From assembly GCA_965235115.1 (NCBI GenBank), contig OZ249440.1, positions 18,972,001-19,036,000 of the forward strand: a stretch of 64,000 bases of DNA, read 5' to 3'. Below are positions 48,501 to 51,500 of this stretch, in pieces. Position 1 is the stretch's first letter, and each line of letters begins with the position of its first letter. The position numbers and the translations under genes were made by a program. The notes below the pieces were generated by a model. It was not told the origin of the DNA. It saw only the letters and a list, made by a program, of their open reading frames with translations, and did no database searches. The stretch is from Laetmonice hystrix (Eukaryota).

Positions 48501-51500
48501 CCACTACCAGTAGCCTATCTTTGCATACACAGAGCGGGAGAAATATATATTCCCCTTGGTGAGTCCCACATACCCAAACAATTAGTTAGAACACAGATCT
48601 TCTCATGCATCAACCTTTGACCTTTCAGCACAAGGAGGAACGTCATGACCTGGGCGCTTAAAGTAAAGGTCACAACAAGACAAGGCCAGCGCCCCCTGGC
48701 AAGCCGCTACCGTACTATAGTTAACAGCTCAGAGCCTACTAATTATTAAGCCCCGCATAATTATGTAAATTCTGGTCTGGCTGTCTGTACCCTTCTGATC
48801 TGCCGCAGACTGTTGCAATAAATGGCTTCATATGGCGACAGCTGACCCAGCACAGGGCGACCCACAAGTTTGGGATGGAAAAGGGAAACATATTGTCATT
48901 GTAATACGCTGGATGTGAAGTAAAATATCAGACATTCAGTCAAGATGGACGCTCGGCGCGCATTTAGTTAATTACAGGTATACAGCAGGATATCTTCATC
49001 CCACAAGTCGCCAATCCTATCTTTGATTATTTACCTCAATAACGAAATAATCACCTGCAAAACAAATCATGTAGCAGTAACCTATACTTGAACATTCAAT
49101 TTCAAAGGTCAATGGGCACTCAAATAATGACCAGGTGCTAATCATGTTTTGGGAGAATTAAGCCCCCCCCCCCCCCAGTAAGGTCATGTAAGGTCACTAT
49201 TATTAACGTAACAAGTCATAATCTGTATCTCTCTTTCCATCAGTAACATAGATTGGAACTCTCCTTTCTAATTTCATATTTAAAGTTTGAATTTGTTTAA
49301 TACCCTAAGGTGGTATTCCTTACCTTAAACGATCCAATGAGTGAATCCGACCTCATCTTCCTAGAGTTGAATATCTGTAAATGACCAAAAGTCCAACCTA
49401 TTGTCATCTGTGTTGTATGCATGTGTATTCGTTCCCTAGCCTTGAGTTACAATATTATTCTTTTCAAAGTAAACTATATTGAGCTAAGCGTAATGGTTTA
49501 AATGGAAGATTAAACTGATGTGATCTTTCTAATCCTTGTATAGAAATATAACAAACCAATACACTCTTAGTAGTTTTTAAAAGTTATCTGCCAATATACA
49601 AACATGCTACTGAACTAACCGCAAACGTAATGAGCTCATCAAAGAGCTCGGCCGGCGAGCAGAAGTAGTTGAAGAAGAAGACCTCATTGAAGAAGGGCGA
49701 GTTAGTGGACTTCTTGATACGTGTTTGTTTGGTCTGGTTGTAGCAGGTAATGCGAGCAACTGGACTGATGTTGGCTCCGGGCAGTTGGCGAGCTTCTACA
49801 ATCTTCACACGGATCTGGAGAAACAAAGGTTGAGCTCACATTGATAAACATCAATCAATACAATCGTCCACTACTCGGCAATATTTCCTTGGTATCACTC
49901 CCGGATTTTTAAAACGGCTTCCATCCTTTCAAATCAAACTTGTATTGCCATCGAGTGAAACAACTGTATCACATTCGCAAGAAAACTCTCCTCGGACTAG
50001 ACGCAGATGAGGACTTTCAAACTGCTAGAATGAGACAGAACATGAGACTGGTCACAGAGACAGAGAAAGCCTCCGCAATCTCTCGACTCAACCTGCACCT
50101 GGAAATCCCTCTTTCGGTCGACGTCGTCAACGATTGTCTTCCGTACGACTGCTATGGTCCGGTCCGGGGTGTGTCGGACGGCAAACAGGAACGTCTTCCT
50201 CTTGGTGATAGGTTGGTCCCTCCTGGCCAGCACCTCCTCGTCCACGTCCTCTATCAGTCTCTCCTCCTGGGACCCGCTCCCGGCCTTCTCTGGGACCACC
50301 TCTACCCGCTCACCAACCTCTGACGGTCGTCGGCCCTTGTGAACGGCCGCTAACACCTCCGACTCTTCCACCTCCATCTCAACACTTTCAATATCTCCCC
50401 TAAACTTTATAAGTAGGGTCGCAGTCAAGCGGAGGGGCAATGGGCCAGTTGCTGAGAAAAATGCCCTTTCTGACAAGCAGGTGCAGTTTAAATGGATCAA
50501 AATATGATCTTAATAGCACGTGCACCTCGGAATTCTTGGCTCCAGCCCTGTATAATAAGGATGTTCTATATACAGATAGTTTATATTTCTACTAGATTAC
50601 TGAGCTAGACCTAGTGATTCATTAACTTGTGGCATGATTGAGACCTTTCCACCAAAACTGACCCTTGAATCAAGAAAGGCCCGAAATGTTGCTGGTTATT
50701 CTAAGTGAACGACAGTGAAGTGGCGGATAGAAACGTCTGTCGATCCCTGGCCGCCGGCTGGCCTTCCCTCCCCGGCAATGGTCACTCGACAGATGTAAAC
50801 AATTCGTACACTCTCTCTCTCCTCCACACCAAACTCCATGGACTGGGAGATAGACATGACACTCCTGGTCTCATCAAACAATTCTAGATGATCTTCGAGA
50901 GACCTGAGACTGTCAGAGGACGAGAGGGAGTGGACAGAGCTGTCAGTCCCAGACACCGTCTCTAGGAGGTCCACAAACCAATTGTTACCGCCTGCCATGT
51001 CCTCATCACATCTTGACGACAAGGATTTCTTGGTCGAGTCGATGCACCTGCCCAAAGTTGGTCTTCACATCCCAGATTCGTTTCGTAACGCCGCATGACA
51101 ACACAGAAGCGCATACACCAATTTAGCTCCCGATTCGTGAAGCCATTCTATATAAATTTTAACAGACTTTCAGGTCGCCTATTTCCTGAAGTAAGTTTCG
51201 TTGTCAATAGTGTGGTGAAGTTGTGCCTTGGTGGAGGTTTGGCTGTGTTCTGTCTGATCGAGGTGTTGTTCACTGGATCCTCCCGAGGCAGATGTTACAA
51301 GCTGCGTCAACACCAACATGCTAAACTTCAAATCGACTTTATTTTCACATGCATATATTTCTGATTCCTCTGCGCATGGTAATTCGGACCCAAGGTATAC
51401 GTATACTTTAGTAAGCTTTTCCATCGGGACACCAAAAGGTCCTCTCTGTTAGTTTGTCTTTAATGCCCAAAATATACGTCAACAGTTTGAACAATTCGGA

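Follow-up and report, generated by a model that had tools for sequence, protein, structure and literature searches.

A candidate alternative first coding exon directly upstream of C2B in a dysferlin-like ferlin gene of Laetmonice hystrix

The ferlin gene and its canonical exons

The window, that is, the whole stretch of DNA analysed here (64,000 nucleotides of contig OZ249440.1 from Laetmonice hystrix), carries a large ferlin gene on its minus strand. The intron of 2405 bases between the exon for the C2A-C2B linker and the first exon of the C2B domain contains an open, coding-like stretch, hereafter called the hidden exon, which ends in the same three residues (DFQ) and in the same phase as the canonical linker exon. 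The coding core of the hidden exon is located at 50099..50377 on the minus strand and runs from an ATG to ...VDRKRDFQ, comprising 93 codons with phase 0 at the 3′ end. This core is considered here as a candidate alternative start of the ferlin, from which C2B could be reached without the linker and, probably, without C2A.

Regarding the host gene, the first C2B exon (49614..49814, minus strand), the acceptor of which is common to both upstream exons, matches the Pfam C2 model at 3.8e-9. Among the human ferlins, it aligns with dysferlin 222-284, myoferlin 252-315 and otoferlin 107-171, and the best alignments are those with dysferlin (1.4e-21) and myoferlin. FerI follows at 46392-46541 on the minus strand (Pfam 7.6e-11), so that the C2B-FerI-C2C motif is found near the N-terminus, and a further C2 domain and a FerA-like region lie downstream. 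The downstream C2 at 29700-30198 is clear (Pfam 2.9e-11); the FerA match at 36217-36705 is weak (1.6e-4, below the cut-off), and the piece at 33288-33575 matches Pfam Pex24p (PF06398), presumably a DysF-related family, at 1.9e-6, just above the cut-off. The DysF model itself is not in the Pfam list returned for the pieces of the window, in which W-rich DysF-like motifs were seen by eye only. Because C2B resembles dysferlin and myoferlin and is followed by FerI, a further C2 and the FerA-like and Pex24p pieces, the host gene appears, by its sequence, to be a type 1 (DysF-type, dysferlin/myoferlin-like) ferlin.

The canonical linker exon (52220..52389, minus strand) is entered in phase 1 through the acceptor gacag|at, encodes an acidic run and a K10 run, and leaves in phase 0 with ...KAQDFQ followed by GTAAGA. 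The initial annotation had named an upstream exon ending KAQDFQ|gt as the canonical one, and this exon was recovered at 52389-52220. The same exon end is present in the relative L002 (STKAQDFQ|GTGCGT), and in human dysferlin and myoferlin (KPQDFQ). The upstream canonical exon (57959..58052, minus strand) ends ...GGADE and has the donor AAG|GTAGGA in phase 1. The pieces at 60321-60220 and 58052-57959 resemble the last C2A strands by eye only; Pfam and PDB searches with 57959-58052 and 60190-60348 returned no match, and no clear earlier C2A exon was found in a search extending up to 10 kb past the window. C2A is probably encoded upstream of the linker exon.

The residues DFQ had been proposed to begin the first C2B strand, and this position is conserved in the human proteins, where DFQ precedes IRV in dysferlin SDKPQDFQIRVQV and myoferlin SNKPQDFQIRVRV; otoferlin has RPMDYQVSITV, with D-Y-Q at the corresponding place. 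On the minus strand of the 64 kb, the pattern GAYTTYCARGT occurs exactly twice, once at the end of the canonical linker exon and once at the end of the hidden exon, and it would be expected 0.006 times in the intron of 2405 bases. A duplication of the linker exon was considered as the source of the second copy and was rejected, as the two exon ends share only GAT TTC CAG|GT. Two more ferlin genes are present in the same genome, with C2B exons at G000:C6:7354761-7354913 and G000:C2:46743150-46743302, both 45% identical to the C2B exon of the window. In the C6 paralogue, the preceding exon ends KPRDFQ|GTACGT, 195 bases upstream of the C2B exon.

Coding signal and conservation of the hidden exon

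From stop to stop, the frame of the hidden exon is open over 170 codons (50509-50000). Within this frame, the initial annotation had described an open stretch of 117 codons ending VDRKRDFQ|gt in phase 0, which proved exact on the minus strand: 117 codons separate the acceptor-like site at 50451 from DFQ. The acceptor-like site (ttttctcag|c) has phase 1, the same as that of the linker-exon acceptor, as had been claimed. The ATG at 50377, which had been put forward as a start in strong context for a product of 93 amino acids, stands in gttgagATGG with G at both -3 and +4. It is the only ATG in the exon, and its frame is that of the C2B exon across a phase-0 junction like the canonical exon end. 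DFQ is followed by a putative 5′ splice site, CAG then GTGCAG (50093..50098, minus strand), and a second in-phase GT (GTTGAG, 50092) lies 6 bases past this donor. The hidden exon is single copy in the 627-Mb genome, as is its upstream flank.

Open stretches of at least 100 codons are common in the window, and openness alone therefore means little. Codon usage was evaluated with a table compiled from the 1260 codons of 20 ferlin exon pieces that could be recognised, against intron trinucleotides, using as a null set the 99 other open stretches of at least 80 codons on either strand. The codon log-odds from Met to DFQ amount to 0.506 bits per codon, and the other two frames give -0.39 and 0.05. 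True ferlin exon pieces (n = 20) score 0.34-0.71 bits per codon, and the best null stretch reaches 0.317, so that the hidden exon exceeds all 99 and falls among the true exons; the coding-like character ascribed to the stretch is borne out in this respect. The signal is confined to the core, as the 24 codons from the acceptor-like site to the ATG score -0.13 bits per codon and the 33 codons after the donor -0.07. An unsupervised maximal-segment scan of 44-74 kb gave 50380-50084 as its top segment, with 51.9 bits, above the C2B exon (32 bits) and the linker exon (30 bits). This segment exceeds the core by 1 codon ahead of the ATG and by 5 codons after DFQ. The guanine-cytosine (GC) content of the hidden stretch is 60%, compared with about 40% around it, and its distribution over the three codon positions (0.69/0.38/0.74) is similar to that of the true exons (0.57/0.37/0.67).

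An exhaustive comparison of the hidden exon with 1.84 billion representative proteins by HMMER returned three hits. Two of them, P0001, which consists of VWA repeats, and P0002, with bacterial Ig-like repeats and a GH25 domain, were rejected as spurious sums of weak repeat matches (6-9 across the two proteins). The third, P0003, is the only single-stretch match among the 1.84 billion representatives (E 8e-7); it is an open reading frame (ORF) of 101 residues on a contig of 122,664 bases in the ENA assembly ERZ26222911. BLASTP of the hidden exon against P0003 gives 7e-18 with 32% identity and 56% positives. When P0003 was aligned locally with the whole 170-codon frame, the alignment extended from the Met of both sequences to DFQVQ (z 25.8, 3000 shuffles), with conserved blocks at ME, VHKGR, ED-DE-V-A-RD-PI-KRK and RDFQ. 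Past DFQVQ, the hidden frame and P0003 are unrelated and stops are soon reached. The initial annotation had made conservation of the DFQ ending one of the points on which its proposal should stand or fall, and P0003 ends ...SRDFQ-VQ. Because the ORF has stayed open at such divergence with the same start and end, the comparison argues strongly, at the sequence level, for a translated unit from Met to DFQ. From the start codon to the donor, constraint is indicated by the codon statistics together with the limits of P0003, the latter taken from one relative only. As the shared residues VQ correspond to GTN CAR, the donor letters GTGCAG may also be kept in the relative that carries P0003. In addition, 11 of the 12 ORF calls around P0003 are on its strand, as expected within a multi-exon gene. 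An ORF of 121 residues lies just upstream of P0003; a stretch of 122 codons in the window (51064-50699), described below, may be compared with it.

Further searches did not extend the family. A profile built from the hidden exon and P0003 had P0003 as its sole match, and searches of the ESM Atlas, Pfam and Rfam with the hidden exon returned nothing. The only match to the degenerate DNA pattern PI-KRK...RDFQ|GT in JGI metagenomes (L022) is a bacterial contig and was regarded as chance. The ORF of the window is not on record by exact look-up, and no transcript-derived protein for the hidden exon was found in the protein-library searches. Judged from its codon usage and from the ORF that it matches elsewhere, the hidden stretch is probably a genuine ferlin exon, coding and conserved.

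Proposed use as a first exon and competing explanations

The interval 50377-50099 on the minus strand is, with modest confidence, read as an alternative first coding exon of the DysF-type ferlin. This reading is favoured because both the homology to P0003 and the coding signal start at the ATG, and also because of the ATG-free leader, the G at -3 and +4, the single ATG and the adjacent repeat. The leader comprises 244 bases (50378..50621, minus strand) without an ATG in any frame, and likely serves as a 5′ untranslated region and/or core promoter. Only 0.8% of shuffled leaders were likewise free of ATG (P ~0.008), and of the 1290 ATG gaps in the window, this one ranks with the 15 longest (top 1.2%). 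The adjacent repeat is a fragment of a dispersed element, 79 bases in length (50454..50532, minus strand), copies of which occur at 78% identity on contigs C1 and C18 of the same genome, and it abuts the acceptor-like site at 50451. The interval from this site to the ATG (50378..50451, minus strand) is open in frame, of phase 1 and of non-coding composition, and lies outside the P0003 alignment. The ratio of observed to expected CpG reveals no island at the hidden exon. An open stretch of 122 codons, with 52% GC and in single copy, is found about 320 bases upstream of the ATG (51064-50699, minus strand); its candidacy as a second exon was rejected on its non-coding codon usage (0.05 bits per codon).

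According to the proposed mechanism, transcription would start inside the linker-C2B intron, within the 244 bases free of ATG upstream of 50377, and translation would start at the ATG at 50377. From the donor DFQ|GTGCAG (50099), splicing would then proceed to the acceptor of the C2B exon at 49814, which both upstream exons would share. In the predicted protein, 93 new residues (MEVEESEV...RKRDFQ) would precede C2B and all that follows it in the ferlin, and the acidic/poly-lysine C2A-C2B linker and, probably, C2A would be absent. The 93 residues are acidic overall, with an isoelectric point of 5.5, 21 D+E and 18 K+R. An AlphaFold model based on the two-sequence alignment has a mean predicted local distance difference test score (pLDDT) of 58 and consists of a disordered, acidic head, a short helix at 47-53 and a hairpin (59-69 / 75-85) just before DFQ with a pLDDT of ~70-75. 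As a hint only, the model suggests a possible packing of this basic β-hairpin next to the first C2B strand.

Several observations weigh against the use of the hidden exon in this way. The donor GTGCAG, already called weak in the initial annotation, does not match the consensus at +4, +5 or +6. The distance from a TATAAA at 50411-50406 to the ATG is 34 bases, too short for a normal leader; the role of the TATAAA is therefore doubtful, and it was given no weight. The three sequencing runs that cover the locus are all DNA unitigs of one sample, none being RNA, and they cover intron and exon at even depth without splice joints. Over 49400-54300, ~1-3% of intron positions in this sample disagree with the assembly, and small indels occur; no difference is listed in the C2B exon. 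In the covered part of the hidden exon, two differences were found, I>L (50134) and a synonymous one (50162); their density is below that of the flanking intron, but their number is too small to weigh, and they say little. The nearest relative with DNA at this locus, L002, the C2B exon of which is 79% identical, has no homologue of the hidden exon, and only 632 bases separate its STKAQDFQ|GT from the C2B exon. In three other relatives, the 0.86-2.4 kb that precede C2B in the available sequence contain no hidden exon, and the canonical exon falls outside this range as well. As for P0003, its start at Met is in part an effect of the gene caller, which requires a start codon. No C2 or FerI match is on record for any ORF call in the 10 kb downstream of P0003, and searches with the C2B exon, including a profile of 8 sequences, returned no ORF from the 122,664-base contig among the best 120 of 444 matches. 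The DFQ-VQ ending is the sole feature by which P0003 would belong to a ferlin gene. Separately, in all runs the unitigs are interrupted at 50282-50368, within the hidden exon, suggesting that a polymorphic site or an indel is present there.

On the weak donor, the absence from the orthologous 632-base intron of L002 and the finding of no transcript at a locus covered by DNA runs only, it may be argued that no working exon exists, and that the stretch is either a chance frame in a GC-rich patch or the decaying, unspliced relic of a duplicated or ancestral exon. The abundance of open stretches of more than 100 codons in the window and the recovery of a single homologue from very large protein libraries fit this explanation as well. 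However, the codon usage and third-position GC are those of true exons and stand above every null stretch, an ORF of 32% identity is open elsewhere with the same start and end, which a relic would not have stayed, and a DFQ|GT of this kind is expected only 0.006 times. Such an origin is accordingly considered unlikely.

An unlikely alternative is that the hidden exon is internal and mutually exclusive with the linker exon. Splicing would in this case run from 57959 to 50451, through 117 codons, and from 50099 to C2B, giving a full-length ferlin that keeps C2A and has another linker. The frame is open from the acceptor-like site, the phase of that site equals that of the linker acceptor, and an acidic part is followed by a basic part, as in the linker. 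Nevertheless, the phases match over a segment before the ATG that is non-coding (24 codons at -0.13 bits per codon), the coding segment and the homology to P0003 both begin at Met, and the two exons have only GAT TTC CAG|GT in common. A matching phase with 24 open codons would arise by chance in about 1 case in 10. Moreover, since the dispersed repeat adjoins the site, an old and conserved acceptor at 50451 is less likely. The initial annotation had left the choice between replacement of the linker and the first exon of a short isoform; of these, the limits at the ATG and the leader support the first exon, and the non-coding 24 codons and the repeat disfavour the mutually exclusive pair.

A conserved coding piece outside the ferlin, such as a nested gene of small size, or an exon belonging to some other transcript, with DFQ by coincidence, would agree with the missing C2 or FerI match within 10 kb downstream of P0003 and with the failure of the 93 residues to match any known family, but is unlikely, as both homologues end in DFQ then GT, a tripeptide and an intron position that are conserved before C2B in this gene, the C6 paralogue, L002 and human dysferlin and myoferlin, the similarity ends two residues past DFQ, and the ORF calls around P0003 lie, with one exception, on its strand.

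Repeats are also present in and around the gene. A very high-copy repeat occupies 54325-55300, in the intron that precedes the linker exon, where the summed unitig depth rises to 150,000-470,000, compared with ~50 elsewhere, in all three DNA runs. Upstream of the exon ending at 57959, a minisatellite with a 30-base unit and ~33 copies extends over 61706-62715 in the minus-strand reading and is open in two frames (GKPIQSTVQR and VNQSRVQYRE, repeated). A second minisatellite, with a unit of ~59 bases, is found on the minus strand 2.5-4 kb past the right end of the window (L023, ~2540-4030, on G000:C5), and its overlapping copies read RGDLTDHLRHPSPPTSAQCDVGTSLTTSDTPLLPPPPSVTWGP. At the other end of the gene, the open frame at 17216-17540 (minus strand) continues past the C-terminal C2 exon into a tandem repeat, probably a minisatellite of the intron in which the frame remains open.

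Relation to known ferlins and implications

Ferlins vary mostly at the N-terminus: some have C2A, in others it is divergent or lacking, and the membrane-binding linker between C2A and C2B is subject to alternative splicing. Otoferlin has short isoforms, in which an N-terminally shortened ferlin is produced from an internal start. The initial annotation compared the hidden exon with these isoforms, and the comparison holds loosely: the N-terminal shortening is shared, whereas the type of ferlin and the extent of the loss are not. Otoferlin is a non-DysF ferlin and loses several N-terminal C2 domains, unlike the form proposed here, which would lose only C2A and the linker.

Among the ferlins without C2A, Fer1L6 keeps a disordered N-terminus (bioRxiv 10.1101/2025.03.15.643383). 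Like human FER1L6 (and FER1L4), the product of the hidden exon is predicted to have a short, largely disordered N-terminus leading straight into C2B, with no C2A; this likeness concerns architecture only, as the sequences were not compared. FER1L6 and FER1L4 are separate non-DysF (type 2) genes, whereas the product here would come, as one isoform, from a gene of the DysF type that seemingly encodes C2A too. Misfire of Drosophila (mfr) offers an invertebrate parallel, as its longest isoform comprises C2B-C2F and the gene has tissue-specific promoters and alternative 5′ exons (PMC1853072). In contrast, misfire has no form with C2A, and its isoforms were obtained by rapid amplification of cDNA ends (RACE) and from cDNA, whereas the exon described here is known from DNA alone; the alternative exon here also has its own conserved coding sequence of 93 residues. 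Lek et al. described topologies lacking C2A, (-)C2A, and their table has a blank at C2A for several type-1 ferlins of invertebrates (PMC2923515). Vertebrate ferlins of the dysferlin/myoferlin type have both linker variants and alternative coding exons at the 5′ end (PMC2923515; 10.1101/2025.03.15.643383). The alternate exon 1 of dysferlin, unlike the hidden exon, replaces the start of C2A and keeps a C2A, and the vertebrate linker exons are internal cassettes, unlike an exon that would remove C2A together with the linker.

The present case would differ from these in combining three features: the gene is of the DysF type, the start is internal and immediately precedes C2B, and the exon brings with it a conserved coding module. 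The gain is modest, as N-terminally shortened isoforms and ferlins without C2A are already known. For annotation, an exon of this kind is likely to be missed by homology-based gene models. If the proposed use of the exon is true, the exchange of C2A and the linker for a head of 93 residues would be a regulated choice within one gene, and would help to explain invertebrate gene models that seemingly lack C2A. It would also provide a short, testable module (VHKGR, ED-DE-V-A-RD-PI-KRK, the hairpin and DFQ) for membrane-binding or partner-binding assays.

A broader and more tentative proposal, which is possible but doubtful, is that one gene with two promoters gives rise both to a dysferlin-like form containing C2A and to a Fer1L6/Misfire-like form without C2A, the latter carrying a conserved 93-residue module, made up of an acidic tail and a basic β-hairpin that packs against the first C2B strand and of such age that distantly related animals have it in common. 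If this were the case, the C2A-less topologies of invertebrates would represent isoforms instead of gene losses, and the module would constitute a new N-terminal membrane- or partner-binding element of the ferlins.

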